A stretch of DNA of 64,000 nt from Hypanus sabinus (GCF_030144855.1 NC_082730.1:4154001-4218000); one strand, 5' to 3'; numbered from the stretch's first letter, positions 10,646 through 41,741 are shown. Notes: generated by a model not told the origin, from the letters alone. Numbers and translations: made by a program.

Positions 10646-10795
10646 CCCCTAAAACAACAGCAGTGTCAGTTGCAGTGACCCTGGTGATTGGACTATCAGT
10701 GGTGGGGACCCTCCTGATTTCTGCTCTCACTGCAATCTTTATGGTCACATGGAGGAGAAGACCTGATGGAACAGCAGTAACTTCAGGGACTGAAA
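10646..10795 (+). pseudogene. Gene 1 transmembrane exon (uncharged TM)
   Basis: Acceptor tgtgttacAG|CC, 150 nt. Translation: TPKTTAVSVAVTLVIGLSVVGTLLISALTAIFMVTWRRRPDGTAVTSGTE. It ends at a GC donor (GAAA|GCAAGT). Confidence 0.88.
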
Positions 10796-10958
10796 GCAAG
10801 TGGATCTGACATTCTGTCTTTGAGTCTAGTATTTGTGGGAGGGAGAGAGAGTGGGTGGGGTAGGGAGGTAACAACAGGGGTGGGAGAGAGGGGTTATATG
10901 GGGTAAAGTGGAAATGGTTTCAGTACATACCCTGTCACCTCTGCTTTCTGTCCCACAG

Positions 10959-11197
10959 ACCCATTGGAGACAGACATCACTTATGCAAATCTTCCGAAGA
11001 ATCGCAGTGTCTGGCTGCCCCCCAGGGGGAATGACAGAATAATGACAGACACGTTACCCCTGGAAAGAGGGCACCCAGGGATCACTCACAGTCCTTGGGG
11101 CAGACTGAATGTAAGGCCTGCATGTAATCTGAACAATCCCATAATCAACCACAGGTCCCTGTCACTAGGGATCGTTCCAACCACTACTGCATATTAA
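10959..11197 (+). pseudogene. Gene 1 cytoplasmic-tail exon with ITIM (ITYANL at 10976-10993)
   Basis: Acceptor tcccacAG|AC. In the phase-1 frame it reads PLETDITYANLPKNRSVW..., matching the ITIM consensus I/V/L/S-x-Y-x-x-L/V. Stop TAA at 11195-11197. Confidence 0.82.
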
Positions 11198-13560
11198 TAC
11201 TCTCAGTTACTCCAACATCTGCTTCTGAAAACTCCAGTCTCAACAACAAGTAACCGTTGTGTAGGTAATCATCAGGACTAAGCCCCCAAATCTCAAAGGC
11301 ACCTAGTGGCATCAATGGTAAATGTGTCAGATACCGTTTATAAATGGACCTATTAAGTAAAGTTAGTTGAGAACCTGTGTCAAGTATGGCTCGAGTAGAA
11401 ATACCTTCAGTCCATTTGGACACACCAGAGTCTGGTCCCACTAAACCTCCAGGAATATTGTTTTGCATTTTAGTATTTCCCTTGATGCACTGATTGGAAC
11501 TTATTCTCCGAGACGCCAGTCCATATCTTTACAATGTCCACCCACAGTTTTGCATCTTTTCTGCTCTGTTTGACTAACCGTTATGTACTTTCTGTAGATT
11601 TTCCTGTTCCTCATGGTTTCACTTGAAATGCCTATCTTTTCCAAGGTTGTAACAGAAAATACCTGTCAATTCTCTCATCAAAAGACCATTTATAACAGCA
11701 TTCCTCTGCTTAGTAAGTCCTACAGGTGGGTCAGTTTCCTAATAAACAGGTCACATTCAGTTAAAACATTAGCAAACATCCACTGAATCAGCTCAGTTTG
11801 AAGGCTATTCTTCTCATTCCTGAATATCTTGATCTCTGTAGCATCAGGGGCTACTTTATCAACAGAGGCTACCACTGACGGCATTACTCAGCTTCTGGAA
11901 ACATCCCGCTCCTCAATCGTATTTCCATCCTCTCTAACTTCTCTGAATAACTCAGTTAAAGATGGAGGAAGATGCTTCTTGTGAGTCATTAAAATATGTA
12001 GAGCAATCGTGCCATGTGATAATACACTCTTCACAACTTGCTCCACCCTCAATACTACCTTCTCAGGTAGTTGAATGCCCCCTTTGTGACCCACACAACG
12101 CAACAGTTTCTCTGATGAGATAAGGTAGTCATAAAGCTTCTGCCCTTCCTCCTGGACTGTGTGCCTCAACTTCATCACAGAGTCGGCCGAACGTCCAGTG
12201 GTGCCAAAGTTTGCATATAGTTTGCTGATGTAGCTAGAGAATTGTTTTGCCTTATCTCAGCTGCTAGACCCTTTAAACTCTCTACCGGTATCTATTTTTT
12301 CATATTATCTGAGCACTGCCATTCATCCAATAGATAAGATTACTCCTCACCTCAAGCCTCACATTCTTCTTCCCGATTGGCTGTGGGTTTGACTTCAGGG
12401 AACATTCTCAGCTGATAATAACACTGGCTCTCCACAGCTACACTTTAGTGTTAAACAAACAGTGACGTAAAAGCTGAAAGCAGCACTGGACTTAAATCAA
12501 CAGCTGGAGGACCAAGAAGACTTTTCACTTCAGACAAAGTCTTCCACTCACTCACAGAAAACTGTGCATCTGGCCATTAAAATATCCACCTTCTAAGTCG
12601 AGGGATATGAACTGGTCATGGCCTGCCTATCCAGGTACCCCTATTCTATCGGCCAGTGTGACTTCAGAGACATCCCTGGTAGTCGCATCGCACTTAACCT
12701 TAATATCTTTGGCATCCATAATAAAGTATCACATGCCACAAAACATTGGCTCAGACAGAAAAATCCCAGAAGAGCCCCCAAAAATGCAACCCTCTCACTG
12801 TGGCTCATAACAAAATTGGCTGGTTTGCTAACTCTGGCTAACAGTCACATAACTCAACAATAATGAGTAACGATGAGAAAGTCACCTTCAATAAGCAACA
12901 CACTTCCAGGTTCGGTACGTATCGGGTTCAACCGAATAGGAAAGTTGGCATGTTCTGATGCGGGAACAAAAATTGTAGTGAATGCTCTGTAAGTGCTGCC
13001 CCATGCAGAGTTGTCATTTCCCAGGAAATAACACCTTACACCGGCATAAAAATAAAGCGGAATTATATTTACTGACATTAAAATTTTAACAGTTAATGGG
13101 GGGGGGGGGGAAGAAAAGTGTCTAGTGCAGCTAAACTAGTTTAAATGGGCAAATAAACATTGGATCTCTGATTTCTCACTTGCTGAACCCATGATCTGCA
13201 TACAAGACACCAGTCACCTTTGGAACTTTCCTTGAAAGCCACTTTGAATGAACTGGCTAACTCAGGAGCATTGGATATTCCTGCTGAGAACTATTTGGCT
13301 ACACAAAGCACTTCTTGCAACAGTGACTCTCCTTTGAACAGTGTTGACATAGTATCTTCCCTTGTGTTCTACTCCACTGCTCCTGCCAACCAAACCTCCC
13401 CGACTGGCTGACACAACATTCCCAGCCTGAGCAAATAGTCCTCATCTCAGCCGAAGCCAAAACACTAAGCTATGAGGTTAACAATGAAAAAACCTCACAT
13501 TTGCAGAAAAACTGCCAAAATAAAAATAGCTCACAGCATAGCAGTAGAAATACAATAAAA
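11195..13560 (-). mobile_element. Ty3/Gypsy LTR-retrotransposon relic: PNMA-like gag, CCHC knuckle and aspartic protease
   Basis: Minus-strand translations: YQLRMFPEVKPTANREEECEA*..LLDEWQCSDNMKK*..ESLKGLAAE (about 12420-12250, PNMA-type capsid); QEEGQKLYDYL (ORF 11888-12178); FCYNLGKDRHF (decayed knuckle, about 11650); ILDTGSQ protease (ORF 11184-11468). Many stops and frameshifts. The upstream limit is approximate. Confidence 0.85.
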
Positions 13561-14003
13561 CACGTGCTCAACTTGGGAATGACACAGGCAAATTGTGTGA
13601 AAGTGATCAAATGGTAACCACAGAGAAGGAGGGCCAATGGGCCTGTTTCTGTAGCTCCATCCTATTTGAAGCCCTCCACCAATACCTGACAGTTCAAAGT
13701 ATATTTTGTTATCAAAGTGTGCATATATTATCCAAGCTTGAGATTCATCTCTTTATGGACAGCCACAAAACAAGAATCTCAAAAGAACCCATGAAAAAAG
13801 ACACTCCTCCTCCTCCTCCTCCCACATACCCTAATCTACACTTTATCCTCCCCATCCTAGTACCCTATTTCTCTTTATCCATCATATCCTATTCAAAAAA
13901 ACCCTGTACTGCTTAAGAAAGCTAAAAATACCCTGACCTGTTTTCTCTCACCCATGCCCAACAGCCCTTTTAATGTGAATTCCTGCACCCCAATTCCCTT
14001 AGA

Positions 14004-17000
14004 TTAATTCTCATCATCTCTCTGTATCCCATACTTCCTACAACTCAGAACTACATGTTCTACTGACTCCTCTTCCTGACATTCCACACACAATCCTGCC
14101 TGGTGTTTCCCTATCAATTTCAATGTTTGGTTTAGTGCATAGTGCCCCTGCCTTAACCTAGTCCACACAATTTCCTCTCTTCTGTATCTACTTCCTACCC
14201 TAGTACCTGCATCATTTCTTTGTATTCCATATAAATGCCTCCCTTTCCCCTCCCTGTCCCATCTTTCTTGCCACATTTGGTTAATTTTTTTCCCAGATAA
14301 CACACTTAACCTCTGCTTTACTGATACTAATGTGCATTTCTATATTTTCTTTCTTTATTGCCCTCTTTGCCAACTCATCCACCCTTTCATTGCCCTTCAC
14401 CCCTACATGAGCTGGAACCCATAGAAATTTATCCTGACCTCCCTGATTTGCAACTCTTGTGACTGACTGAAGGATTTCATGAAGTACATCTTGCCGGCTG
14501 TTTGAGTGAGAAGACCTTAATCTTGCTAGTACTGAAGATGAATCTGAGCATATCAACGCTTTGACGAGTTTAGTTTTCTCCACCCAACACAACGCAACCA
14601 ACACTGCCATCATCTCCACTGTATACACCGCTAACTTATCAGATGTTCTTCAGCTGATTGCAATTGCTTTTGCTGGTATAGCCACCCCAAACCCTGTCAC
14701 TCCTGTCTCAGGTTCCTTAGCACCATCTGTATAGACCTGAGTATAATCACTATACTTTTCCATCACATGACAGTTAAATGCACTTACCAAATCAGTTTTA
14801 TACTTTCCTTTCCTTGTTACCTTTAACAAATGCCAGTCTACGTCAGGCCATACCAGCTTCCATGGAGCTACTGAAGGACTTATCCTTAGATCAAACACTC
14901 CACATGATCTAGCAATATCATTCCCTACCCAACTAAAGTTTTCCCTCTGAAACCTCCCATTTTCCCAGGACTCCTGTAACACTCCTTTAGCAGGGTGAGA
15001 GTCATTGTGTCCCTGCAAATAAACCCAGTAGTTTGCCATCAATTGCATCCTTCTTAATTCCAAAGGCATTATTCCGATTTCTACCTGCAGGGCCGATACT
15101 GGTGATGTTTTAAAAGCCCCACTGCACACTCTCAAAACCTGAGCCTGAATCACATCCAGTTTCCTTGTAAGAGATCTAGCTGCTGATCCATACGCTACAC
15201 TTCCATAATCCAACACAGATCTTACTAAAGCCACATACATTCTCTTCAATGCGGAACAACTTGCTCCCCATTCCCTACCAGTCAAACATCTCATCACGTT
15301 TATTACTTTTTTACATTTCTCCTCAACTTTCCTGATATGGTCTGCCCATGTTAATTGTGAATCAAATATAAATCCCAGAAATTTAAATGATCCAACCCTT
15401 TCTAATTCAATCCCATACATCCTTAACTTCTTCCCTACTTCAATTCTTTTTCTAGTGAAAAATACAGTTTGAGGTTTTTTTTCCACTGAAAATCTACATC
15501 CCCAATCATAACCCCACTCTACCACTTCATCAATTGCTCCTTATTGTTTCCTGATTATATGCCCCATGTTCCTGCCTCTTTTCCACAAGGCCCCATCATC
15601 CACAAACAGTGACCTACCTATATCGACTGGTACCTTTGTGAAGACATCGTTGATCATAATGATGAAAAGTAACGGGCTAATCACACTACCCTGAGGTGTG
15701 CCATTTCCCACTATGTACTGTTTTGATAATTCTGATCCAATCCGAACTTGAATTTTTCTACCAAACAAAAAATATTTAATCCAATTAAAAACTCTCCCCC
15801 CAACCCCCATCTTGTGCAGTTTAATTAATAATCCTTCCATATCATATCATAGGCTTTGTCAATGTCAAAAAAAACACTGCAACTACTGACTCTTCATTTG
15901 CCTGGGCCTTTCTTATTTCAGTCTCTAACCTTATCACTGAGTCCATGGAATTCCTCCCCTTCCTAAAACCACTCTGATAACTTGCCAGCATTCCTCTCTT
16001 CAAGATCATATGATAACCTTTCAGTTATCATCCTTTCCATTACCTTACATATATTTGATGTTAGTGCTATTGGCCTGTAGCTAGTGGGTTTTGACTGATC
16101 CTTGCCAGGTTTCCTTATTGGAATTACTACTGCTTCTTTCCATGCACTTGGTAATCTTCCCTCCTCCCACATTCTGTTATAAAAATGCAGTAACTTCAAG
16201 AGCGCTCCCTCTCCTAGATTTTTTAGCATAACATAGCATATTAGATCGTTCCCTGGGGAGGTTGTTCTTGATCTCTTTATTGCTCTCACCATTTCTGCAA
16301 AAGTAAATGGATCATCAATTGTATCATCCATTTCTTCCCTCCAATTTAACACACCTGGGTATTGACTCATTGTTCTTTCCCTTTTCCCTTCTTCAGACAA
16401 ATTTTCTGAACTATGTATCTTTACAAATGACTTGGCTATGATCTCAGCCTTATCCCTGCTGGAGACTGCTGTTTCCTCCTCAGATATCTTTACTGGATAC
16501 TCCCAATCCCTTCCATCTCCCCCCAGCCTCTTAATCATTCCCCATACCTCTACCACAGGCATTTTTCTTCCTATTTTGTTGCAAAAACTCCTCCAACTTG
16601 CTCTTTTAGCTTGACGTATAGTTCCTCTCACCTCTGCCTGTGCCTTCTTATATTGAATCAAATGGTGCATATTATGGGTTCTTTTAACTAGCCTGAATGC
16701 TCTATTTCTGTTTTTTTACAGCCTGACAACATTCCTTTGTCCACCATGGCACAAGTTTTCTATTCATCCTATTTTTACTCCTGGTTTATAGATCCTTCTG
16801 CTGCCATAATAATTGCTGAAGTCCCCTGACTGTTTAATTCATCTATATCTCCAGAAATGTCAATCCTTCTTTGCGTAACTTCTGGAACTTAACCCAATCT
16901 GCTTTTCCAAACACCCACTTTGGGACTCCCCCACCTGGTCTTATTTCAACTCTTTCACCCACTGAACATAAATCTGGGTAGTGATCACTGCCTACTGTTG

Positions 17001-17603
17001 AAGCAGTCCAAACTCCCCAGTTACTAATGCCAGCCAAGACATTAGACACTAACGTTATATCAATACCGACTCAGTTCCTGTTATGTTTATCCTTGTTCCT
17101 CTACCATCATTCATACACACCAAATCCCTTTCTTCCATCAAATCTTCAATTACCGTTCCATTTGAATCAGTAATCGGATCACCCCATATTGTGCTGTGAG
17201 CATTGAAATCTGCATACCACACTACTTTATGTCTATTTTGTCCTTGTATCCTTAGTAGGCTGTCCAAATCCAACCTCTTACATGGATTGTAGTAGTTAAT
17301 TATAACCACTCCCTCACCTCTCTTCCATATTTCCACCACTATTTATTCCTGTTCGTCTCCTTTTTCCAGTACTCTATACGGTATACCTTGCTTGATTAAC
17401 ATAGCACAACCTCCTCCTCCCCCTAGATTTCTGTCTTTCCTTATCATTGTATACCCATGTACCACAAAGTCTAAAGCTGGTTTCAACCAAGTTTCCTGAA
17501 TACACACTACATCCGGTTTTACAACCATTTCTTTAATAAAGTCCTTAAATTCCTGGCCATTGGCCAGTAAACTCCTTGCATTCCATTGCAAGAGGATCAC
17601 CAT
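14004..17603 (-). pseudogene. Nimb/I-type ORF2 (APE endonuclease, RT, RNase H, C-terminal CCHC), frameshifted
   Basis: LQWNARSL..CIQETWL (APE), YRPIALTS, GTPQGSVISP..FVDD (RT), YTDGAK / SDS / WVPAHVGVKGNERVDELAK (RNase H), CVECQEEESVEHVVLSC. Confidence 0.92.
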
Positions 17604-17620
17604 AATGAGTATTAACCAAC

Positions 17621-18862
17621 CTATGACACTTCCTCGCTTGACTGATTAGTGAGGTTCTCCCTCACTTCTTCCCATGTCAGTCCAACTAACCCTAAATGGT
17701 TTACTGCTGCTTTGACCACCAGCTGAATTTTGTCACTTTTTGACTTTACCTCTGCCGTACTATTAAGGACTCCTGCAATGAATGTTACTAGAGCTTTTTT
17801 CCCCACATAAATTCTGTCATTTACTCTTCGCTGCATCTCATGTATCCCTATTGCTCTCTGGTCATTAGGAGCATTATTTAGTTCTCTTCACATTCTTACA
17901 GCTTCTGCATGAGTGATCTTTTTTTTCACTCTTATTTCTTGAATTTTATTCTCCCATCTCATAACCTCACGCTCACAATACGCCACATTATGAGCTCCTC
18001 CACAATTACAGCATTTTGGTTGCACTCCTGTTCCGCACTTTCCATATTCATGATCATCCCCACATCTAGCACATCTCCTCTGCCTTTTACAGTTTTTAGC
18101 TATGTGTTCACACCTTTGACAATTATAGCACCTCAATGGCTTTGGCACACATACCCTTACTGGGTAACTCAGGAAACCCAGGAACACTTTCCTTGGCACT
18201 CTTTCTTCTTCAAATTCAATCAATACTGTTTCACTTTCCTTTTTCATTCCCTCCTTTGTTGTTTTCAGTCTTAGAATATTAATTACTTTCCCCCCTTTGA
18301 TATTCCTCTTCAACTCCTCCATGTTTATACTCATTGGTATACCCATGATCACTCCTTTACAGCCACCATTTCATGCTCCCACCCTCCCTGTATATTCCAC
18401 CTTGCATTTTCCTATCTCTTTTAGCTTGAGTGCTTTCTCAAGTTGTTCCTCATTCACACGCCTTACCAATAGATTGCCATCATTAAGGACTTTTGCAAAT
18501 ACTATTTCCCCTATCTTATTTGCCAGAGTTGTTGTTAGCACAAAAAGGGTACTTTTCTTCATGGTTCCTTGCACCTTCTCATTAAAACTAATTATGACAA
18601 CACCTCCTCTCTGAACTTGTTCATCTTCCTCACTTTCAGAACTCTCTCCACTGTCATTTCTTATTCTTTTATTCCCTTTGTCTTGGTTTTCATTCATCCT
18701 TCCCCTCACTATCTCCTTATTCCCTTTATTTCTCCCTTCACAATAATCCATTTCTCCCCAGCTGCCTACCTCTGATCCCAAATCCCTATCCCACTCCTTC
18801 CCGACTCTTCTTCCCTCAACAAGTCCCAAACCACATGCACCAACTCTAATCAGAACCCTCAC
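17621..18862 (-). pseudogene. Nimb/I-type ORF1 (gag-like, zinc knuckles), frameshifted
   Basis: RCYNCQRCEHIAKNC, RCARCGDDHEYGKC and KCCNCGGAH in ORF 17888-18352, with flanking fragments 18371-18862 and 17621-17836. Confidence 0.9.
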
Positions 18863-20082
18863 CCCCCTCCACCACCCACCCAGTCACCGTCCCACAGCCC
18901 CTTATAAACACCTGCCGCCAAATTGGCCACAGGTGTGCCTCTTTGATCCAGGCTGATCTTAACAGCTGCAAGAACCAGAGTCCGGAGCTTCGGACCGGAT
19001 TGAGACCCGGAATGCAGATTCTGGACCGGACAGGACACTGACACATGGGCTGATCCAATAACCCTTTCATTCCTGGAATCATTCTTGTGAATCTTCTCTG
19101 AACCCTCTCCAATGTCAGTATATTCCAGTCCGTTAGCCTCTGCACCTAGGTCCAGGTATGACTCTAAGCTGAGCAGATTCTTTTGAAATGTTTCACCTCA
19201 GACTTCTGCCTCTTGGTCGTGCTCTTCTTGTACACTTGATAAAAGTGATGAGATTGAGTCTTACCCATGTCCCACCTAGACTTCAGAAAAGGGAATGTCC
19301 AGAACCTTTGGAATGAATCCTGGAGTCGGCCACCTTCCAGCAGCCAGTTGTTACAGAGCTTACGTGGACCCCACTCATGTGCACGTCAGGACGAACTCTG
19401 CCCACGCGAAGTGATGGATTGAGTATGAAACTGGCCTCACAGTGGACATCAGACATGTTTGCTGCTCAAATTATAGATGGTCTCCTCCGTCAGCCCCCTT
19501 CAACTGTTACACCAGTGCTTGATCACACTGGGGACTGCAGCAACCCTCCTCTTACCGGTAGATTTCAATTTCAAAAAAGAGGCAGTCCCACTGGAAATTA
19601 AAATGAAATGATTCATGTTGAGTTCCCCCCGCTGCCCCCCTGCATCCAAGAGACAGGTGGCTACAATTAAAATGGACTCCACGGGGTGTGGAAATGTGGC
19701 ACAACCCCGGTGAGACTCACCATCTTTTATAGATGCACCAGAGCAAGCATCCTATCTGGATGCATCACAGCTTTGTATGGCTACTGCTCTGAATATGAAA
19801 TGGCAGAGTTGTGAATGCAGCTCAGTCTGTCACACAAAGCAACCTCCCATTCATGGACTGTGTCCTCACTTACCACCGGCTCAGGAAAGGAGACAACACA
19901 ATCAAAGAGTCCACACACCACTGTCATTCTCTCCTCTCTCCCCAGTCCACCCCCACACCGTCCCACTGACCCAAAAATCTGTCTTTCTCTGCCCAACACC
20001 CGACCCCACACCATGCCTTCCAACAACACTCTCCGCAAAGTCTCCACTTTGTCTCCACCGTCCCCAGCACACAGATGCACAG

Positions 20083-20120
20083 ACGCACACAGACACACAT
20101 AGACACACACACACACACAC
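20083..20120. repeat. (CA)n-rich microsatellite
   Basis: Direct reading; much shorter in the unit 2 paralog (about 46500). Confidence 0.85.
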
Positions 20121-20240
20121 ATGGGATCAGGGTGGAGACAGCAATCGGAGGGTGGAGGGGGGTTGAGGACTGAGGTAGATCATCCATTTTCATATTCAAT
20201 GGTGTGAGAGGCTGGGTTGCTTGAGGGGCCAAAGCCAACT

Positions 20241-20245
20241 CGTGT

Positions 20246-20276
<31 letters not shown>

Positions 20277-20286
20277 CGTGTGTGTG
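20241..20286. repeat. (GT)n microsatellite
   Basis: Direct reading. Confidence 0.9.
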
Positions 20287-21356
20287 CGAGACAGAGAGAG
20301 GTGGAGAGATCTTGGGAACTGAGGGAAAGACACAGAATAAGTAACCAAGAGAGGAATGTGGACGCAGAGACTTCTGAAGAGAAATTAAAGATAAAGTGAA
20401 AGAGATGTGCTGTCAGAGACTATGTGAAACAGGAGAATGAAAGGACAAGATAGAGATGGGCAGAGAGGCTGTGGGTAAGGGTACAGAATCTGAGAGAGGG
20501 AGAGAGCTAGAGATGGACAGGGACTGTGGTTGGAGATGTGGAGATGGTTAATGGGATGTGTTTGAGTTACAGCTTGTGCTCTGTGCCTGTTTGGAGTAGT
20601 ATTGCCTCTTCCCCATCACAGTGCATTAGATAAGTGTGACATAGCCAATTTCCACTGCTTTACTTATTACCCCTCAACCATCAAGCTCTTGAGTAAATGT
20701 GGATACCTACCCTCACTACCCCATCATTAAATGTCTTACACCAAAGATCTCACTTTAAGGATTCTTTATCTCATTATCTCATGTTCCCAATATTCATTGT
20801 TATTTATTTATATTTGCATTTGCACAGTTTTGGTTGTCTTCACTCTGGTGAATCTTTCATTGATTCTGTTTTAGTTACTATTCTATGGATTTGTTGAGCA
20901 TGCCCAAAGCAAAATACATCTCAGGCCTGTATATGGTGATATATATGTTCCTTGATAATAAAACTTACTTTGATCACTTTGAAGTGTACTTGTTTCCAAT
21001 CTTTGTTCTCCAATCACCAAATGAAGTTACAAGTTTTAAGTTCAAGCCCAAGTTTCAAGTTTAATTATCATTCAAATATACATGAATACAGGCAAACGAC
21101 AAGGTGTAAGTCACAAACCAACAGCGTACAGCGCACTGCACATAGCACATTGCACAAATAGCACGTTTGGTTATTCATCAGTGCAGAACAACATACAGTC
21201 ACAAAGAGAGATAAAAATATATCGCCCAAGTCTTGAGTTGTCCTGGTCCAGCTTGTTCTTTCACCAAGTGAACACTGGAGGGCAGCACAGACAGGAGGGC
21301 TCAGACACCAACCCAGTATGAAATCTGATTTGGACAATCCACATAGTATAGTGAGA

Positions 21357-24300
21357 ATGGTTGCAAGGACAGTGTACCTGGAGGAAAAATGTACAGCCAG
21401 TGCAGAGTACACCTGTGGCCATTCCCCTCAATAATAACTTTAGATACTATTGAGAGGGATGACCTAACAGGGAGGAGCCACAATGACCAGGTCTCTGGCA
21501 CTGAGTTTGATGCTGTGTCTCAGATGAGCGGAGAGGTGAAGAGGACTGCAGTATTGGTAGGAGATTCCTTCATCGGAGGAACAGAGAAAAGGTTCTGTGG
21601 GTGAGATAGAGACACACAAATTGTATCTTGCCTCCCTGATGCCAGGATCAGGGATATCTCAATTCTTGACCATGGCATTCTCAAAGGCAAAGTTGAGCAG
21701 CTGAAGTTTTTGTACATATTGACATCATGACATGGGTAAATAATGTGATGAGGTCCTGAAGAGAGATTTTATGGAGCTAGGTAGAAAGCTGAGAAACAGG
21801 ACCATCAGGATAGTGATCACTGGATTGTTGCCTGTGCCATGTGCCACTGAGGGAAAGAATAGGATGATTTGGCAGGTGAATATGTAGCTGAGGAACTGGA
21901 GCATGAGGCAAGGGTTGAAATTTATGGATCTTAGTGATCTCTCCTGGGGCAGCTATGACCTGTACAATAAAAGACAGGCTACACCTGATCCCGAGGATCT
22001 CCAATATCCTTGTGGGCAGGTTGGTTCAAGTTGTTTGGGTGGGTTTAAACGAGTTCAGCAGGGGGCTGGGAACTGGAATGATAATGCGGAGGATGAGCGC
22101 TATCAGATGTAAATAGATGGAATGTGTAGTGAGACTCCTAGCAGGCAGACCTATACGATAGATAAAAATTGCAGTAAACCGGAAGAGCTGTAATGTAAAG
22201 GTGTTCAAAATTGAAAAAGGTGAATACAGAACTAAAGGTGTAATATTTGACCGCGGGCGGTAATGGAATAAGGTCGATGAACTTATAGTACAGATTCAGA
22301 TTGGCAAAGATGATGTAGGTATCACTGAATAGGCAGGAAGGCAGAGGGTCTGGCATGGCACTGTTGATAAAAAATGAAATTAAATCATTCGAAAGAAGTG
22401 ACATAAGGTCAGAAGATGTTGAATTGTTGTAGTTAGAGCTGCGGAACTGCAAGGGTAAAGAGACACTGATGGGTGTTATCTACAGATGCCCAAACAGAGG
22501 TAAGGATGTGGTCTACAAGTTAGAATGGGAGATGTGAATTGCCTGCCAAAAGGGCAATGTTACAGTACTCACAAGGTCCATCAATATACAAGTAGATTGG
22601 GAAAACCAGGTTGGTGTGGGATTCCAAGAGGGGCAATTTCTAACTTATGGGATATCTTTCTAGAGCAGTTTGTGTTTGAGCCCTGTAGGGGTTAGCTGTT
22701 CTAGATTGAGTGTTGTGCACTGAACCAGAATTGATCAGAGAGCTTAAAGTAAAACAATCTTGAGGGGTAACTTATCATTATGTAGTCAAAATGACACTGC
22801 AATTTGAGAAAGGGAAGCTGAAATCACATCTTACAGTATTACAGTGGAGTAAAATATATCACAGGGGCATGAGAGAGGAGTTGTCCAGTACTGATTCAAG
22901 AAAAAAATAACACAGGCAAGGATGATGACAGAGATGCAATCGCTGCAATTACTTAAAGCGATTCAGATGACACAGGATTTATTATTCTCAGTGTAGGAAG
23001 TATACTAAGGGCAAGATGACACAACCATGGCTAACGAAGGAAGTCAAGGTCAACATGAGGTCCAAAGTGAGGACATATAATAGAGCAGAAAATTTGCGAG
23101 ATGTTAGGGGAGTGGGAAGCTTTTAAGTACCAACAAAAGGCAACTAAAAGTCATTAAGTAGGTAAATATGGAATAAAGCTAGCCAATAATATTAAAGACA
23201 ATACCAGCAATTTCTTCAGGACCATAAAGTGTGAAAGAGAGGCAAGACTGGATGTTGGACCAGTGGAAAATGATACTGTTATGGGGACAAGGAAATGGCA
23301 GGAAAACTGGATAAGTATTTTGCATCAGTCTTACTGTGGAAGAATCTAACAGTGTGGAGGAAGTTATAGGTATCAGGGGTCATGTAATGTGTAAAGTTAC
23401 CACTACTAGAGAGAAGGTCCTTGGGACACTGAAAGGTCTGATGATGGATAACTCACCGGGAGCAGATGGTGTACTCCCCTAGATTCTGATAGAGGTGGTT
23501 GAACAGATTGTGGAGGCATTAGTAATGACCTTTCAATAATCATTAGATTCTGTAAAGGTTCCTGAAGACTGGACAATTGCAAAAGGAACCCCACTCTTCA
23601 AGAAAAGAGAAAGGCAGAAGAAAGGAAATTAAAGGCCAATTAGTCTGACCTCAGTGGTCGCGAAGATGTTGGATTCAGTTGTTAAGGATGTGTTTTCGAG
23701 GTTCTCGGAGACACAGGATAAAATAGGCCATAGTCAGCATAGTTTTCTCAAATGAAAATCTTGCCTGACATATCTGTTGGAATTTTTTGAAGAAATAACA
23801 AGCAGGATAGACAAAGGAGAATTGGTTAATGCTGCAAACTTGTGTAACACCCTGGGAAAGTGTTCACTGCTGACATAATGGTCTTTCAGTAGAAGCTGTG
23901 TTTGGAGTATTGTGAGCAGTTTTGGGCCCTTTACCTCAAAAAGGATGTGCTGAAACTGGAGAGAGAACAAAGGAGGTTCATGAAAATTATTCCAGGATGA
24001 ATTGACTTGTCCTATGAAGTGAGTTTGATTGTTCAGATCCTGTAATCAATGGAAATAAGAAGAATGAGGGATGACCTAATTTAAACCTACCAAATGGTAA
24101 AAGGTCTTGATAGAGTCTCTGAGGAGAGGACGATTTCTATGCTTGGCGTTTCGAAGACCAGAGCGGACAGACTCGAAATAGATTGGCATCCTCTCCGAAC
24201 AAAGCTTAGAAGGAATTTGTTTAGCTAGAGAGTGGTCAATCAATGGTATTTGTGATCACAGGCAGCTGTGGATGCCAATTCTTTATGCGTAAGGCAGAAG

Positions 24301-33100: not shown

Positions 33101-36100
33101 CTGGCAAGGAGAGCTATTTTGCTACACTGGAAAGAAACTAACTCGCCCACTGTTTTCTATTGTCTCTCCTTTATCATGTCATGTTTAAGCTTGGAGAAAA
33201 TTAGAAGCCGGACATTTGATACATCTTTTGAATTTGGGGCCCTTTATTTAATATTTTCACATGATTTAATTAAGCTTTATTTATTTATTTTTCTCTATTC
33301 TCTTTGGACAATATCCCTGTCCATGAAGGTTCAGAGATGACTGGAAGGATGTGTTGTTTTTTCTCTCTCTTTTTTTAAGTTTATCCTCATTTGGACTGCC
33401 CAATCTTTTTTTTCTTTCTCTCTTTTTTGTTTTAGTTTAGTTAGTGGGGTTTTTCTTTCTATCAATAAAATTTCCAAACTTTTTTTTTACGATTGCTATG
33501 AGGTGTTGTAATTTCTCTCTGACCATTGTATATATAACAGCATAATATATTACCTATTTGAGTTTGATATTATATGCTTTTTGTCTTTAATATTGCTGTT
33601 TATATGTCTTTTATATTATCTACTTGTTAAACTCCTCTTTCGATTTGTATTTGTATATTCTTTATTTGAAAATCAATAAAAAGGATTGAAAAATGAAAAT
33701 GTTCTTGGACGTGGTGGTGCAAGTCCAGAGGCACATGGACCTTCTACCTGATGATAGCACTGAGAAAGAGCATGGCCTGGGTGGTGAGGATCTTTGATTA
33801 ATGTAGATGCTTTCAGTGGCTGGGGGGATTTTATCTGCGATGTACTGGACTGAATTTGCTACATTTTGTAGAACTTCCACTCAAATACATGGTTTCCATA
33901 CCAGGCCATAATGAAACCAGCCAGCATACTGTGGGAAAACATTGGAATTCTCCCGTGAGGAATTCTTCTTTCATTGATAGACTTCTAGATATTAAAATGA
34001 TCAAGCAAATGGCAAGAAAAAGTTTTAGCCAGGATCAGTTGACTACGTTGTGTGGTCCATTGGTAGCACATCTGTTTCCTGCTCCTGCTCGTCATGTTGA
34101 CATGAGCTCGGTAAAGTGTTTGTGAACACAGATCACACAATAGAACCTCAGAGCAGGGAGTGTGAGTGTTTACACTCTGCGGCCATTTATTGATAACATC
34201 CTGTGCCTAACAAAGTGGCCACTAAGGGTATGTTCATGGTCTTCTGCTGCTGTCATGCATCAGAGATGCTCTTTTTCATCAGCACTGTTGTAACGTGTGG
34301 TTATTTGAGCTACTGCCACATTCCTGTCAGCTTGAACCAGTCTGGCTATTCCCCTCTAGCCTCTCTTATAAACAAGGCACTTTTGCCCAAAGAAATGCAG
34401 CTCAGTTTGTTTTTTAGATTTAATCACCACTATCAGTTTTATCTAGAGATTGATGTGGTGAAAATCCCAGGAGATCGGTCGTTTCTGAGATACTCAAACC
34501 ATCCCATCCGGCATCAACAATCATTCCACAGTCAAAGACACTTAGGTCACATTTCTGATGTTTGGTCTGAACCTCATGACAATGTCTGCATGCTTTATGC
34601 ATTGAGTTGTTGCCACATGATGGCTGATTTGGTATTTGCTTTAATGAGCAGATGTCCAGTTGTATCTAATAAAGTGACTATTGAGTGTGCTCCAGGCACA
34701 GCCCTGCAGTGGATTCAGTGACCAGCATCTCAATGTGGAGAAGCCATCCAAAGTGAGACAGAGAGAGATACTGTAGGGAAACTGTACCTTCAAATCTCTG
34801 AGTCTACGCTAACCATCAACCACCTGTTTACACTCATCCTACATTAATGGTGTCTGGTCCAGACAGCATTCCTGGCCAAGTACTAAAGATCTGTGTGGTC
34901 CAACTAGCAGGAGTATTTAGCACTTTCTTTACTGTGCATCCGCACATGGTTGGGAACGGGTTTAGAACCAGAGAAGCTGCCCCAAAGACACTCTGATCCA
35001 TTTTTTTAAAATCTTGCCGTCTCCATCATATGAGACCGGAGATAGAAGCAGTCAGCAGTTCAGGACACTTTGTTGAATGAGAAAAAGCCAACATTTCAGG
35101 TCAAAGTCTCTACATTAGAACTGTGGAGAAGAAAAATTCTACAGGGGGTCTCTTTGATAGGGTGCCATGGGGATAAGCTGGCTACGGGATTATCTGGTCA
35201 ATGAGTGGCAACAGTTGGAACAGGGAGAACATGGACAAAAGGACATTGAGCAGAATGTATAGACGTGAACTGTAAAACAGGAAGCCTGGTCCGGTAGGTC
35301 AGGCTGGACACCATCTCCACCACCACATCCAGCTAGATTCTCTTACACCCTTCTTAAGCCAATCACCCCTAGTGGGGCACAGGCTGTTGACAGCCACTAA
35401 CTAGAGACCACTGTTCATCTAAACAGGGAATTCTGTCTCTCCAGGACACCAGAAACCTGCCCAGAAACTGTAGTATTGGACTGTACACCCTCTTTGCTCC
35501 AAGGTCTTATCAGAAGAGGAGAGTCCTCAGAGACAGACTCAAACTGTGACTCCACGCTCACCACCTGACACTGGAGATCCAGCCAACAGGTGAGGGTCGG
35601 ACAGTGCAGTGTGTACAGGAGCAGCCAGTGGAAGGAACCCCCTGGGGACGGGAGGTGCGGCCTGTGGGACATTTCCCAGAGACGGAACAATTTGTGCTGA
35701 ACCAGCTCTGTCGGAGAGCTTGGGGACCCAGGTCCAGTGACAATTCAGTCTGAGTGGTGGTCACCTTGAGTCCGAACAGCCGACAAACTGACCCCTGCAC
35801 ACCCACAGTGAGGGTATCCCAGTGTCTGACCCCAAACCTCCAACAATATGTCTGTGACCACACCCGACCACTGATATCTGGCTGCAGGTTGAAACTTCAT
35901 TTCTCAGGGCTGGGGGCAGAGAGTTTTGAGCCCTGATGAAGGGTCTCAGCATGAAACAAAAGGAACTTTGTGTTGACTGTCTCACAGGGCTGGGAGAAAC
36001 ATGATGGGCCGAATGTCTTTTTCCAGTGTCTTTGATTTTCCCAGGACTGATTCCACTTCCAATCTCTGACCTCACCTATGGACTGTCTTGTCTTGTCTCC

Positions 36101-39100
36101 TCAGCTGGGACCGCGGTTCCCCCAACCACTGTGACCGGAACTCAGGGACACTCGGTCTCCTTACATCCTGGGATCCCAGTCGGACCGGACATTACTGAGG
36201 TTGAGTGGAGTCGGGTATGGCCCAGAAACAGGATTGTGAAGTACTCGAATGGGAACATTGACTACAGTAGTAATGAGCTGTACAAGAACAGGATAACCTT
36301 TCATTCTGGGAACATCAGTCTGGAAATCCATGATCTACGGAGAAATGACTCTGGTGAATATATTGGGATTTTTACAGCTGCAAGTTCAGGAGATGAAAGT
36401 AATACAACAGTGCGACTGGAGGTGTACGGTGAGTGACACCAGTCCCTGAAACACCCTTAATGGATGGGTGAGGGCAGATCCTCTGTGTTTCTCTGTTTAC
36501 TGAACCCCACTGACTACCCGTGGCTGGGGCTGGGCTCACGGTTCCAGTGTAGTGAGTCTGGAGGATACACCCGCCACATCCACAGAGGCGGAGTCAGGAG
36601 CCGGGAGGGATTGAACCAACAATGGGGAATCTCATGTGTCTGAGACTGAGGGAGCTCAGCACACAGGGAGAATGGACTTGATGTGAATGGGCTGGACAGT
36701 CTGTATCTGTGGGTCTCAGTTGCACACTCTACCCCAGGTGAAAGGCCTGGTCTGTCCTGTTCAGGGATCCCAGTTATCCCATCTGTTTCCCAGGACACTG
36801 CTTGTTAATTGCCCAGACTGAGCTCAGCAAGGTGTTTATTCCTCAGCCTTCATGCTGTGCTGTGCTGAGTGAGACCCTGTGTATTCATTACACTGAATAT
36901 TGTGTCCCAGTGAGTGACACATGGAGGGAAGGGAAATGGTTTTGTGACACTTCCTCCTGTGTGTGTCCAGAACGTGGTGTGGGACATGGAGTGATGGGAG
37001 TTGTGGGTGTGGCAGTAGAGCAGAGCAAGGTGTTACTCAGGGAGAAACTGGTCAAAATATGTAAGAAAGAGGGAAGGGAGTGGAATGTAAGTCTGAGGAT
37101 AGTGTAAACTAAATGGGTAAAGTTACTCGAAGGTATTCTAAATGACCAAGCATAGAAGTATTTGGATTGGGAGATAGTTGAAATGTCTCTCTGTGTGGTA
37201 GGTTGTGTCTAGATTTTTGAGGAGGATATCGGAAAGTTGATGAAGGAAAAGCAGTTAAATTTGTCTACATGGACTTTAACAATGTCCTGCATGGGATGTT
37301 GGTGAAGAATGTTTATTGCCTTGGCATTCAGGTTGAGGTTGCAAATTGTATTCGACATTGGATTTGCAGGTGATCTACAAGATGGTTGTCTCTCTGATTG
37401 GAGGACTGTGATTAGTGAAATGCCTCAAGGATTGGTGCTGGGTCCTTATTTGTTATCTCTATCAGCAATCTGGATGACAATGTGGTTAACTGGATCATCA
37501 AATTTGAGGATGACACTGATTGGGTGTACGGTAAGGAAGACTATCAAAGTCTTTAGCGGGATCTGGACCAGCAAGAATAATGAGCTGAAAATTGGCAGTT
37601 TCAATTTGATGCAGACGAGTACAAAGCCTTGACCCTTGGGAAGTAAACCAGGGTGGAACTTAAATAATGACCAGTCAGGTACTGAAGAGTGTAGTAGAAT
37701 AGAGAGATCTTGGAATACAGAACAATAAATTCTTGAAAGTGTTGTCACAGTCAGATAGGGTCATAAAAAAAGCTTTTGGCACGTTGCCATTCATAAATCA
37801 AAGGATTGAGTCCAGGAGTTGCAATGTTATGTTGAAATTTTATAAGACCTTGGAGAGGATTAATTTGGAGTATTTGTGCAATTCCTGTCACCTATGTACA
37901 GGAAAGGTATCAATTCGATTGAAAGAGTGCAGAGTATCAGGACTTGAGGACCTGAGTTATAGGGGAAGGTGGGGGAATTTCAAGGTGCAGGTGGAAGTAT
38001 TGGAACCAGGTTCAATTTCAATGTCTAACTGAAACTTGAATAAATATTGGGAGGGATGTTAAAGACTTTGTCCAGATGTGGATCAATGGGGCTAGGTATA
38101 GACTAGATGGACTGAAGGATCTGTTTAGCCACTGCAATGTTCTATGATTCAATGTAGTCTCATTGAAAGGACCAGGAAGCATAGATGTTGATCCACTGAA
38201 GGTGGAGACCAGTGGGGTCGAAGGAAAGGGCCAGAGGAAACATATCCTTGCTTTCGGTGGGAGAGGGTGTGAGAACAGAGACGTAAGAAATGGAACAGGT
38301 TCTCAGGGTCTCACACCTTCATCATAATCTGGGCAGGCAGAGTAGAGATTGAGAGATTGACAGAATAGAATGGGCTGTGTCTTGTGTTGGACCAGATTCA
38401 AGGCAGCTCAGGGCTGGGGCTCACTCAGGTTTTAGGCTTTGAAGGGATGCAGGGACCACACAGAGGAGGAACAAAAGACATGGAAATGGAGAGAATTTCT
38501 GGAATAGAGCGCTATAAACAGGACATGATGGAGAGTTTGTAGATGAGTGTGGGTTGTGTTTGGGAAAGAGGGTGCAGCACGTGGGAACTTGCTTCAGCAG
38601 CAAGTGACTGAACAGAAGGATGAGGGAAGGTTTAAATCGTTTGGGTAAAAATGAGGTTGGATTGGTTTGAAGTTTACTCTGGACTGTTGGGGATGGGACG
38701 AGGGCGTTGAGGATCGAGCTGTCCACGATGATCTCCTTTACTCATCTTCTATCTCTCCCTCACGCCCTCAGAGCCTGTGTCAGGAGCAAACATCATGGTT
38801 CAGAACATCACCGGGACCTGTAGCCTCACCCTGACCTGTTCCGTGGCCTCTGGCAACCCCATCAGCTTCAGTTTGTGGAGAGGAGGAGAAGTTACAGGAG
38901 ACAACAACAGCCATCACTTCTGGAGACACGAAGAGACGATACAGGTTCATTGCACAGCAGAGATGGAGGATGTGGTGTACGGGTGTAAGGCCAGCAACCC
39001 CATCAGTGAGGACACCGCACAGGTCCGGCTGGGGAACGTCTGTAATCTGGACACATGTAGTGAGTGTCAGAGGAAGGAGTTGCGATTTAGTTATCTCCCC

Positions 39101-41741
39101 ATCCCAGGAGCGTGAGATGGGACAGTTTAGAAGAGCTTAATAAAAACATAAACATTTACAGCAGATTACAGACCCTTTGACCCACAATGTTGTGCGGACC
39201 ATGTAACCTACTCTAAAATCTGCCCAGAAATTCCCTATAGCACAGCCCTCAATTTTTCCAAGCTCCATGCTCCTATCGAACAAGCTCTTAAAAGACCCTA
39301 TTGGACCTGTCTCTACCAGCATTGCTGGCAGTGCATTCCATGCACCCACCAGTCTCTGTGTGAAAACTTACCTCTAACAGCCCCCTTGTCCCTACTTCCA
39401 AGCATCTTAAAACAATGCCCCTTTGTGTTAGCCATTTCAGCCCTGGTTATATGTCTCTGACTATCCACATGATCAATGTCTCTTATCATCTTGTACACCT
39501 CTATCAGGTCACCTCTCATAATCCTCTTTTGTTCCAAGGAATTCACTCAACCTATTCTCATAAGGCATGCTCCCCAATCCAGGCAACATCCTTGTAGATC
39601 TCCTCGACACACTTTCTATGGTTTCCATATCCTTCCTGTAGTGAGGTGACCATAACTGAGCACAGTATTCCAAGTGGGGCCTAACTAAGTGTAACTCCAC
39701 TGATTTTAATCTAGCACCGTCACACTGGCCCTCAATAACCCCTCTACTCAAGCTCTACCTCCACCTCCCTGACCACTCGGTGCCTCAGCCATCCTAAATA
39801 ATCCTTCCCTCCAATCTAATCATTCCTTCGCTCCAGCAAGATTGCACAGTTGTTTCAGTATGGACCATCTGCAAAATGCACTGCAGATCCTCACCCAGGC
39901 TATGCTGACAAATATGAGTGGAGGCCTGTGTATAAAATCCAAAGACAAAGCTTACCTACAAAGTAAACTGTCCTCTGCAGTATCCTCTCGGACAGGGTCA
40001 GAGAGCAGAATACATCCAAGCTGAAGTTTTTAAGAAAGCACATGGTACATTGGCATTCATCAACCATGGGATTGAGTTCAAGAGCCGAGAGGTAAAGTCA
40101 GACCCAACTTAGATTTCTGGTCACCTCACTGCAGGAAGGATATGGAAACTATAGAAAGGATTCAGAGGAGATTTAGAAGGATGTTGCCTGGATTGGGGAG
40201 CATGCCTTATGAGATTAGCTTGAGTGAACTCGGCCTTTTCTCCTTGGAGTGGTGGATGATGTGATGTGACCTGATAGAGGCGTATAAGATGATAAGAGGC
40301 ATTGATCGTGTGGACAGTCAGAGGCTTTTTCCCAGGGCTGAAATGGCTAACATGAGAGGGCACAGTTTTAAGGTGCTTGGAAGTAGGTACAGAGGAGATA
40401 TCAGGGGTAAGTTTTTTTAATGCAGAGAGTAGTGAGTGAGTGGAATGGGCTGCTGGAAATGGTGGTGGAGGTGGATACAACAGGGTCTTTTAGGAGAATC
40501 CTGTATAGGCGCATTGGAGCTCAGAAAAATAGAGGGCTATGGGTAGCCCTAGGTAATTTCTAAGGTAGGGACATGCTCGGCTCAGCTTTGTGGGCTGAAG
40601 GGCCTGTATTGTGCTGTAGGTTTTCTATGTTTCTATGTTTGAGAAGATGGGCAATTTCAGTTTTGATTCTTCCACCATTTCCTTAATTCCTGTCACAACA
40701 TTTTCAAATGTCAACAGTATTGTTCTTTTGTGTACCAATGGGAGCACCATACAGCAGGAGGAAATGGGGGGAGTGATGTGATAGTGACTGGAGGGAATAG
40801 AGGATGATGGGACTGAGGGGTATTGAAGGGGTGGAGTGCAGGTCAGTGATGTGATGTTGATTAGAGGGAATGGGGAAAGAGGGGACTGACGGGTATCAGA
40901 GGGGTGGTGATGGGTTTGGAGATGAGTGATTTGATGGAGAGAATTGGATGGAAAGATTGAGGGGTACTGGAGGGGAGGGGTGGGATGGAGGACAGTGAGG
41001 TGATAGTGATCGGAGGGAATCGGGACTCAGGGGACTGAGGGTTATTGGAGGGAAAAAGGTTGGAGGGACTGAGGGATGTTGGAAGGGAGGGGAGTGGGGT
41101 GAAGAGGTGGGGGTTGGAGGGGATTTATGTGATGGTGATTGCAGGGTACTGAGGGACCATGTTGAGGTGACAGGGAGATTTTTCCGACAGAGGAGGGATG
41201 GAGTGAATTCATCAATCCTGTGTCACTGGGAATGTGAGGACTGGATTCATCAGGAAATCTTTTCTCCTCTGTGTTACAGCTTCTAAACCAACAGCGGTGC
41301 CGATTGCAGTGACCCTGGTGTTCAGATTGTCAGTGGTGCTGACCCTCCTGATCTCTGCTCTCACTGCGATCCTCATGGTCACACGGAGGAGAAGACCTGA
41401 GGGAAGGGAAGTAACTTCAGGGACTGAAGGCAAGTGGAGCTGACACCCTGTCATTGAGTCTAGTATTTGGGAGAGGGAGAGAGAGGGGGTGGGCTGGGGT
41501 GGTGACAACAGTGGTGGGAGAGAAGAGTTAGATGGGGTAAAGTGGGAATGGTTTCAGTACAGGCCCTGTCACCTCTGCTTTCTGTCCCACAGACCCACTG
41601 GAGACAGGCATCATTGACACAGACCTTCAGAAGAATCGCAGTGTCTGGCAGCCCCCCAGGGAGATTGACAGGGTAATGACAGACACATTACCCCTGAAAG
41701 AGGGCACCCAGGGACCACTCACAGTCCTTGGGGCAAACTGA
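27061..41741 (+). CDS. Gene 2: intact CD2/SLAM-family-like type I membrane receptor, 321 aa; join(27061..27115,36105..36428,38772..39059,41280..41429,41593..41741)
   Basis: 55+324+288+150+149 = 966 nt, all introns phase 1, no internal stop. The protein has a signal peptide MNTRHLLISCWLTLCASLSG, a Cys-less IgV with DSGEY, an IgC2 with CSLTLTC...YGCKASNPIS...NVC (SLAM/CD2-type four-Cys pattern), a hydrophobic TM, an RRRR stop-transfer and a Tyr-free tail. Confidence 0.85.
27438..27995 (+). mobile_element. GC/CpG-rich non-autonomous retroposon-like insertion in gene 2 intron 1
   Basis: A CpG-rich block ending in AATAAA...TAATCTAATAATCTAAT. It is absent from the homologous unit 2 site (GGGATGTGGAACCCAGG, about 53818). 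Confidence 0.6.
29343..30276 (+). pseudogene. L1 ORF1p (coiled-coil/RRM type), 5' part frameshifted
   Basis: ORF 29578-30276 carries the L1 ORF1 hallmarks RRRNLRI.xLPE, IRIVEDYP and RFPAKL. Confidence 0.9.
31001..33340 (+). pseudogene. L1 ORF2 remnant (APE plus C-terminal domain; RT missing near 32330)
   Basis: APE fragments lie at 31001-31700 and the linker at 31724-32330. The sequence then jumps directly to the post-RT segment (ORF 32402-33340). No QG..LSP or YADD motif is present. Confidence 0.85.
34173..34688. mobile_element. Tc1/mariner-derived MITE (uninterrupted paralog)
   Basis: TA|CACTCTGCGGCCATTTATT at the left end and AATAAAGTGACTATTGAGTG at the right end. Confidence 0.6.
36105..36428 (+). 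CDS. Gene 2 exon 2 (IgV domain lacking the canonical disulfide)
   Basis: AG|CT ... TACG|GTGAGT, open. It shows the C-strand W (EWSR) and DLRRNDSGEY, with no Cys. Confidence 0.93.
37185..38155 (+). mobile_element. Old CR1 fragment (paralog of 6095-7080)
   Basis: Collinear similarity; decayed RT motifs. Confidence 0.85.
38772..39059 (+). CDS. Gene 2 exon 3 (IgC2 domain)
   Basis: AG|AG ... TGTA|GTGAGT, 288 nt open. Translation: EPVSGANIMVQNITGTCSLTLTCSVASGNPISFSLWRGG...YGCKASNPISEDTAQVRLGNVCNLDTC. Confidence 0.93.
39137..39700 (-). mobile_element. CR1 LINE 3' fragment
   Basis: Minus ORFs LVRPHLEYCAQLWSPHYRKD and MRGDLIEVYKMIR. Confidence 0.88.
40030..40640 (+). mobile_element. CR1 LINE 3' fragment
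   Basis: FWSPHCRKDMETIERIQRRF-like segment and a TTCTATGTTTCTATG tail at about 40640. Confidence 0.88.
40765..41135 (+). repeat. G/purine-rich degenerate minisatellite in gene 2 intron 3
   Basis: Four to five units of the motif seen at 10255-10500. Confidence 0.7.
41280..41429 (+). CDS. Gene 2 exon 4 (TM with Arg, codon AGA 41324-41326)
   Basis: AG|CT, 150 nt. Translation: TSKPTAVPIAVTLVFRLSVVLTLLISALTAILMVTRRRRPEGREVTSGTE. Donor AAG|GCAAGT (GC-AG intron). Confidence 0.88.
41593..41741 (+). CDS. Gene 2 exon 5 (Tyr-free cytoplasmic tail)
   Basis: AG|AC; DPLETGIIDTDLQKNRSVWQPPREIDRVMTDTLPLKEGTQGPLTVLGAN*, with TGA at 41739-41741. Further downstream exons cannot be excluded. Confidence 0.72.

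Follow-up and report, generated by a model that had tools for sequence, protein, structure and literature searches.

We analysed a stretch of 64,000 nt of vertebrate DNA (hereafter, the window) from the stingray Hypanus sabinus (NC_082730.1:4154001-4218000), which is rich in retrotransposon fragments and spans a section of an array in which CD2/SLAM-family receptor genes lie in tandem. Two plus-strand members of this array, here termed gene 1 and gene 2, had been interpreted in an earlier reading of the locus (hereafter, the original prediction) as an inhibitory and an activating receptor that work as a pair, probably in a cartilaginous fish, and the host was correctly recognised. Self-BLAST revealed a tandem, head-to-tail segmental duplication, whose period is about 31.6 kb and in which the segment at approximately 2415-28521 recurs at 34267-54114 as a series of colinear blocks with 82-98% identity. 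The first copy (2415..28521, plus strand) carries exons 2-5 of gene 1 plus the gene 2 leader exon; the second (34267..54114, plus strand) carries exons 2-5 of gene 2 together with the leader exon of the next array member. As detailed below, gene 1 is a pseudogene, and gene 2 is intact, with an activating-type transmembrane (TM) segment and tail.

Gene 2 is an intact five-exon gene with a tyrosine-free tail

Gene 2 consists of separate leader, V, C2, TM and cytoplasmic exons, which are joined into an open frame of 321 amino acids, exactly the product that had been predicted. All of its acceptors are canonical, the leader, V and C2 exons end in GT donors, and a consensus GC donor closes the TM exon. 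The leader exon (27061..27115), which encodes the signal peptide MNTRHLLISCWLTLCASL and closes in phase 1 with a GTAAGT donor, was located 9 kb upstream of the V exon by tblastn with the leaders of the homologues P0007 and P0164 (annotated proteins are referred to here by P numbers); leader candidates situated just upstream of the V exon were implausible and were discarded. The V exon (36105..36428) encodes a cysteine-free V-set Ig domain, and the C2 exon (38772..39059) an Ig domain with six cysteines. The stalk/TM exon (41280..41429), which encodes ..AVTLVFRLSVVLTLLISALTAILMV.., holds an Arg codon (AGA, 41324-41326) and is followed by the donor AAG|GCAAGT. This Arg is residue 8 of a hydrophobic span of 26 residues flanked by Pro and TRRRR, and lies in the outer third of the TM helix. 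Finally, the cytoplasmic exon (41593..41741) carries IIDTDL, in which codon GAC at 41616-41618 specifies Asp at the position occupied by Tyr in the family, and its frame closes at a read-through stop (TGA, 41739-41741). The residues and codons on which the original prediction was built for both genes (GGA, AGA, ITYANL and IIDTDL) were all found where it had placed them, and the activating-type signature assigned to gene 2, that is, an Arg inside the hydrophobic TM span plus a tail without tyrosine, was confirmed.

The cytoplasmic exon also contains an intact donor, AGG|GTAATG, after position 41672. If this donor is not used, the frame ends at TGA 41739-41741, which corresponds to the annotated read-through isoform P0218 of Mobula birostris; if the GC donor of the TM exon is not used, the protein stops four codons into the intron. 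The tail is tyrosine-free in every version, whether spliced and read through or intron-retained. An alternative would be that gene 2 does signal via tyrosine motifs, with the donor after 41672 spliced to a distant or diverged exon missed by similarity. This idea draws on the Mobula annotation, where spliced and read-through isoforms of one gene coexist (P0161 and P0218), and on the state of the donor itself, which is intact in gene 2 and destroyed both in gene 1 and in an older Arg-bearing lineage of rays described below. Against it, the read-through stop of gene 2 is placed as in P0218, and an exon that might restore tyrosines to the tail, a possibility already raised in the original prediction, was not found: neither tblastn (word size 2, E up to 50) nor regular-expression scans of all plus-strand frames detected a TEYAAV-like or PEV...Y..V exon in the window, including the interval from 41.7 kb to the next leader at 53.5 kb. 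We therefore give a missed tyrosine exon only a slight chance, and read gene 2 as a receptor whose tail lacks tyrosine. A TTYVGL match at 44310 was discarded as a second-motif exon, since a retrotransposon fragment lies there in the opposite orientation.

The intron after the TM exon opens with GC instead of GT in both genes (41430-41431 in gene 2 and 10796-10797 in gene 1; AAG|GCAAGT). NCBI models of relatives splice "GTE|D" over the same TM/cytoplasmic junction. The RefSeq models P0007, P0158, P0159, P0162, P0165 and P0217 end three to four codons into the GC-donor intron; models of this kind are probably truncated or represent an intron-retained, short-tail isoform. One of them, P0162 from M. 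birostris, whose model tail ends at the GC-donor intron, has a Glu midway along its TM helix (..VLSVVETLLIF..); it is uncommon for a ligand-binding chain to have a negatively charged TM segment.

Gene 1, with a neutral TM segment and a tyrosine motif, is a pseudogene

The leader exon of gene 1 lies beyond the 5' end of the window, and each of the exons for its ectodomain is damaged. Within the V exon (4143..4466), an in-frame TAG at 4256-4258 replaces the TGG of gene 2 and of all relatives (Trp in gene 2, P0007 and P0157), and the DSGEY stretch, conserved in V domains of the family, is eroded. DNA alignment, tblastn and translation of the C2 exon (7699..7985) revealed a 1-bp deletion after 7781, which turns GGCAACCCC into GGCACCCC in the DNA alignment, and a change of the last conserved Cys to Trp; homologues match this exon in two frames in tblastn because one base is missing after 7781. 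The stalk/TM exon (10646..10795) encodes ..AVTLVIGLSVVGTLLISALTAIFMV.., an uncharged TM segment with a Gly codon (GGA, 10690-10692), and has a GC-type donor. In the cytoplasmic exon (10959..11197), which carries ITYANL at 10976-10993, the donor after 11038 has been lost, with AT in place of GT, and an additional G shifts the frame of the read-through. Gene 1 belongs to the type with a neutral TM segment and tyrosine motifs, and is a pseudogene. Its ITYANL is a variant of the first tail motif of the family and, given the TAG, the deletion, the Cys-to-Trp change and the lost donor, this ITIM-like motif (immunoreceptor tyrosine-based inhibitory motif) lies in a pseudogene.

Both genes are placed in the CD2/SLAM family

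The 107-residue V domain of gene 2 contains no Cys, so that the canonical intradomain disulfide is absent, and a cysteine-free V domain is a hallmark of the CD2/SLAM family. This domain scored 34.7 bits with Pfam V-set and 24.5 bits with Receptor_2B4, above the respective cut-offs of 26 and 21 bits. Matches of the C2 domain to Ig_2, Ig_3 and ig remained below the Pfam cut-offs; its six-Cys pattern is common to all annotated ray SLAM-like proteins and is followed by a single hydrophobic span. A profile-free HMMER search with the V domain of gene 2 retrieved 168 proteins, and the closest relatives were ray and shark gene models automatically named SLAMF5-, 8- or 9-like, CD48-like or Ly-9-like, with the best matches in Hypanus, Hemitrygon, Mobula and Pristis. 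These sequence features place genes 1 and 2 in the CD2/SLAM family, the scaffold that the original prediction had proposed.

The usual tail of the family comprises a first motif ([TI][VI]YA[ND][IL] or IIYTDL, as exemplified by TVYANI, TIYANV and IIYTDL) on an exon homologous to 41593-41672, followed by TEYAAV on the next exon. Since tails of the relatives carry T-x-Y-x-x-V/I motifs (TVYANI, TIYANV, TEYAAV), rays have SLAM-type switch motifs; the proposal that the array relies on ITIMs rather than on SLAM switch signalling was not borne out, as the normal tail of the family is not of an ITIM-only type. Gene 2, whose tail is without Tyr, lacks the T-x-Y-x-x-V/I switch motif used as a criterion for the SLAM subfamily. 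Its absence is still compatible with membership of the wider CD2/SLAM family because SLAMF8, SLAMF9, CD48 and CD2 lack such motifs as well.

Comparison with these tails also indicated on which side the two genes had changed. Relative to the family consensus GIIYTDL, found in P0157 of H. sabinus and in several Mobula genes, gene 2 departs only at the tyrosine (Tyr to Asp; GAC requires a single base change if the ancestral codon was TAC), and gene 1, with DITYANL, departs at five residues. Most of the dense differences at the motif are therefore attributable to gene 1. The eight differences in 24 nt reported earlier were recovered for 10973-10996, and their density relative to the remainder of the exon gave a Fisher p of ~0.017, a value that is weakened by the stretch having been chosen after the data were seen. 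Conversely, the TM changes (Ile-Gly to Phe-Arg, plus a second Gly to Leu) are on the side of gene 2, whose TM exon derives by point mutation (Gly/Val to Arg) from the neutral TM exon of the family itself. Both genes have the same 9-nt deletion in their cytoplasmic exons, and their 3' modules are therefore sisters.

A gene outside the window shares the ectodomain of gene 2

The V exon of gene 2 was matched at 108/109 residues by P0157, a RefSeq protein of H. sabinus named "SLAM family member 8-like"; for comparison, the best relative in Hemitrygon akajei is about 70% identical over the same exon. Identity between gene 2 and P0157 amounts to 107/107 residues in the V domain, 94/96 in C2 and 40/51 in stalk, TM and juxtamembrane regions, and P0157 has a neutral TM segment, IIYTDL and TEYAAV. 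P0157 is not encoded in the window. Its upstream pseudo-exon has an Arg at the site of a stop in the window, and its gene is situated on the same 53.9-Mb chromosome as that of P0007. With regard to the P0157 model itself, its N-terminus is odd: it has no signal peptide and maps to two open reading frame (ORF) pieces within intron 1 of gene 2 (35167-35256 and 35445-35588, plus strand), the second of which carries a TGA in the window. The start of this model is probably an annotation artefact, the true leader being encoded by the MNTRHLLISCWLTLCASL exon.

The ectodomains of genes 1 and 2 are 81% (V) and 87% (C2) identical, as against 100% and 98% for gene 2 and P0157. Judged by these values and by the tails, the P0157-type gene outside the window is a better candidate than gene 1 for the inhibitory counterpart of gene 2. 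A similar arrangement was observed in both Mobula species, where Arg-type models and models with an ITIM and an immunoreceptor tyrosine-based switch motif (ITSM) fall into one 90%-identity cluster. Specifically, the Arg-TM protein P0159 goes with P0212 and the Arg-TM protein P0217 with P0163/P0216, the partners carrying IIYTDL and TEYAAV. An ectodomain shared between predicted opposite signalling ends is the classical paired-receptor pattern, here within the ray family.

The idea of a paired-receptor system thus remains plausible for the family in rays (gene 2 with P0157, and the Mobula pairs) and fails for genes 1 and 2 of the window, since gene 1 is a pseudogene. For the latter pair to be rescued, the stop and the frameshift of gene 1 would have to stem from errors of assembly or from a null allele in the individual that was sequenced. 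The neutral TM segment and ITYANL of gene 1 are indeed in place, and H. sabinus also has an intact gene of this type (P0007, 89% and 86% identical to gene 1 in V and TM, respectively). Nevertheless, gene 1 has four independent defects (TAG, 1-bp deletion, Cys to Trp and lost donor) in addition to the eroded DSGEY, and its ectodomain is much further from gene 2 than that of P0157. We consider a working pair of genes 1 and 2 very improbable, and take gene 1 as dead and a P0157-type gene as the putative partner.

The TM arginine recurs in relatives of gene 2

TM segments of the family were lined up on the VT[WR]R stop-transfer motif and the column 18 residues upstream was scored. Arg occupies this column in gene 2, in the Mobula proteins P0159, P0165 and P0217, and in an older ray lineage represented by P0206 and P0031 (Hemitrygon), P0027 and P0215 (M. 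birostris) and P0198 (M. hypostoma). The concern, expressed in the original prediction, that the Arg might be a private variant is thereby removed. Members without Arg have Gly or Val in this column, and all those with complete tails (16/16) have kept a Tyr motif. Tails of the older Arg lineage contain no tyrosine, and the donor homologous to the 41672 site of gene 2 is destroyed in it. When TM and tail of P0157 were used as query in a region-restricted search of proteins, no further Arg-type proteins with complete tails were retrieved. In a tree of the TM exon (50 columns), Arg genes occupied three separate positions with weak support, and the choice between one and several origins is not settled by it.

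Taken together, these observations raise the tentative, and at present rather doubtful, proposal that one TM codon (Gly/Val) changed to Arg repeatedly and independently, with the old lineage, Mobula and Hypanus as separate cases, and that every such change came with loss of the tyrosine motifs and beside a sister of near-identical ectodomain. If so, this codon would be a recurrent switch from an inhibitory or SAP-type SLAM receptor to an adaptor-coupled activating receptor, and paired receptors on a SLAM scaffold would be placed at the base of the jawed vertebrates.

Divergence between the two genes is uneven

Mean divergence between genes 1 and 2 outside exons was 7.3% (0.073), and synonymous divergence was lowest in C2 (0.016), higher in V (0.128) and highest in TM plus cytoplasmic exons (0.25). 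The ratio of nonsynonymous to synonymous divergence (dN/dS) was 0.83 in V and 0.58 in TM plus cytoplasmic exons; positive selection behind the dense differences was rejected, as both values are below 1. The dN/dS of 3.5 in C2 rests on 12 versus 1 changes, with a pseudogene as one of the partners. This uneven divergence indicates a mosaic history, and patchy gene conversion would fit it better than the pathogen-driven selection invoked in the original prediction. An exchange of the V exon with other array members would likewise fit, the V exon of gene 1 being nearest to P0007 and that of gene 2 identical to P0157, and the signalling exons of both genes fit as representatives of older lineages.

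The same data bear on the view that gene 2 is a redundant, decaying duplicate or a non-signalling decoy, in which the Arg and the Tyr-to-Asp change are drift, the frame is open through youth or conversion, and the ancestor of genes 1 and 2 was already without the second-motif exon. Several observations are in line with it: the 9-nt cytoplasmic deletion and the lack of a TEYAAV exon are common to genes 1 and 2, gene 1 of the same duplication is already dead, the dN/dS of 0.58 for TM plus cytoplasmic exons derives from few sites and is not clearly distinct from relaxed constraint, and no annotated protein matches gene 2. On the other hand, repeated drift would not be expected to place Arg in the same column in Mobula and in the old Tyr-less lineage of several species. 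Moreover, the five exons of gene 2 are open and its splice sites good, whereas gene 1, which is of the same age, has gathered at least four lesions, and the motif of gene 2 is off the consensus at the tyrosine alone. We thus regard decay as unlikely, while still a serious alternative, and favour the reading of gene 2 as an intact activating-type receptor.

Other features of the window

Between gene 2 and the next leader exon, a further C2 exon (44674..44834, plus strand) with two stops and a frameshift is the decayed remnant of another family member. The leader exon of the next array member (53469..53523, plus strand) was identified by tblastn with homologue leaders, and the remainder of that gene lies outside the window. 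Among mobile elements, a nearly full-length retrotransposon without long terminal repeats at 13801-19143 (minus strand) encodes an endonuclease, a reverse-transcriptase region, RNase H and a zinc-knuckle ORF; since it was found in copy 1 of the duplication only, its insertion postdates the duplication. Fragments of long interspersed nuclear elements (LINEs) with reverse-transcriptase ORFs (Pfam RVT_1) are present at 367-2336 (plus strand) and at 54700-61500 (both strands), the latter block being AT-rich (~30-34% GC) and filling intron 1 of the next array member, a long intron that follows the leader at 53469. A low-complexity stretch rich in CA/TG at 19800-20600, duplicated at 46100-46900, gives long His/Thr- and Cys/Val-rich pseudo-ORFs on both strands.

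Discussion

The reading that we favour, with a probability of roughly 55%, is that gene 2 is an intact activating-type receptor derived from a tyrosine-motif form, that a P0157-type sister with the same ectodomain is the inhibitory member, and that gene 1 is dead. Conversion of gene 2 would have involved three steps, namely, a change of Gly to Arg, accompanied by two others close by, in the outer third of the TM helix, the replacement of Tyr by Asp in the first tyrosine motif, and the absence of the exon for the second motif (TEYAAV). The Arg would pair within the membrane with the Asp of an adaptor bearing an ITAM (the tyrosine-based activation motif of immunoreceptors), of the FcR-gamma, CD3-zeta or DAP12 type, and gene 2 would then activate the cell on a ligand that is also met by the P0157-type sister with its identical V domain, neutral TM segment and ITIM/ITSM tail. 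Both this Arg-Asp pairing and activation by gene 2 are proposed by analogy with the behaviour of LILRA, KIR-S and PIR-A. Gene 1, as a pseudogene, would have no role, and gene conversion would preserve the similarity of the ectodomain exons, with the TM and cytoplasmic exons remaining distinct.

A number of observations weigh against this interpretation. Firstly, none of the proteins found was flagged as the window's own, and gene 2 does not seem to be present in the protein collection searched. Secondly, the V and C2 exons of gene 2 could owe their open frames to conversion from a functional neighbour, without any selection on gene 2. The donor after 41672 has been preserved in it and may be spliced to an exon that similarity did not reveal. 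Thirdly, the co-variation of TM Arg with tyrosine loss that had been anticipated was only partly found: it is seen in the Arg-less members and in the Tyr-less old lineage, but the Mobula proteins P0163, P0216 and P0212 have a TM Lys two residues off the Arg column together with both tyrosine motifs (ITIM and ITSM), and a basic TM residue and tyrosine loss are therefore not strictly coupled. In addition, tails of Mobula Arg-type proteins are seen only in models that end in the intron past the GC donor, and the association between Arg and Tyr loss draws on few independent events, two of them clear. Finally, the original prediction had assigned the TM segment of gene 2 to the FcR-gamma docking type, for which NxxR is the defining motif (PMC4536121). 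Gene 2 reads T-L-V-F-R, with Leu and not Asn at -3, and this assignment cannot be upheld on the motif; the old ray Arg lineage has L-T-I-R or L-L-I-R at the corresponding site. The outer-third position of the Arg, taken by itself, would still point to an adaptor of the FcR-gamma or CD3-zeta type.

From a practical point of view, the annotation best suited to gene 2 is that of an intact SLAM-like gene of the activating type that contains a GC-AG intron, and to gene 1 that of a pseudogene. The frequency with which automatic models of relatives stop just past the GC donor is a lesson for annotation. A literature search found nothing relevant on SLAM/CD2 or SLAM-like paired receptors in cartilaginous fish, nor on ITAM adaptors in sharks, and ray SLAM-like proteins exist as automatically named gene models only. 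An activating-type SLAM-like receptor is known from frogs and apparently undescribed in sharks and rays. If our interpretation is correct, the change of a TM Gly codon to Arg together with that of Tyr to Asp would constitute a clean natural experiment on how an inhibitory receptor is converted into an activating one.

Comparison with known receptor systems

In mammals, the SLAM family (SLAMF1-9, CD2, CD48 and 2B4) combines a V domain without disulfide and a Cys-rich C2 domain, with one exon per domain, as do the ray genes. In the ray relatives, T-x-Y-x-x-V/I motifs are encoded by short cytoplasmic exons. No numbered SLAMF gene has a one-to-one orthologue among the ray genes, and NCBI names for close paralogues vary (SLAMF5-, 8- and 9-like, CD48-like, Ly-9-like). 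We know of no mammalian SLAM-family member with a charged TM residue for adaptor pairing.

Paired receptors have recurred in the course of host-pathogen and self/non-self conflicts, most of those known being built on LRC (leukocyte receptor complex), FCRL, SIRP, CEACAM or lectin scaffolds. A combination of TM Arg with an ITIM is known in KIR2DL4. Such a mixture of a basic TM residue with ITIM/ITSM occurs in Mobula P0163 and P0212 and not in gene 2, which suggests that both features may coexist. With the paired families KIR, LILR/PIR, CHIR, SIRP and CEACAM (PMC2832619 for CEACAM), the ray genes would share near-identical neighbouring ectodomains with predicted opposite signalling ends. Further points in common would be the derivation of the activating from the inhibitory form, through gain of a TM charge and disappearance of tyrosine motifs, as well as gene conversion of ectodomains and frequent pseudogenes. 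They differ in that the scaffold is of the CD2/SLAM type and in that the predicted inhibitory partner has one ITIM-like and one SAP-type switch motif instead of two ITIMs.

The closest parallel is offered by Xenopus, in which the CD2/SLAM expansion includes members with activating-type TM segments (Guselnikov et al. 2011, Immunogenetics 63:679, according to the account given in PMC4536121). As far as that account goes, the frog genes resemble those of rays in being a lineage-specific expansion, in which some members have tyrosine switch motifs and others an Arg-bearing, activating-type TM segment. If the ray SLAM-like genes act as paired receptors, the CD2/SLAM scaffold would have been used in this manner both in cartilaginous fish and in frogs. 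According to the same account, the activating members of Xenopus have an NxxR TM segment shared with LRC and FCRL genes, whereas gene 2 of the ray has no Asn at -3. The route taken in rays, if the proposed recurrence of Arg is real, would consequently have been point mutation in place, unlike that of the frog with its shared NxxR-type TM segment.

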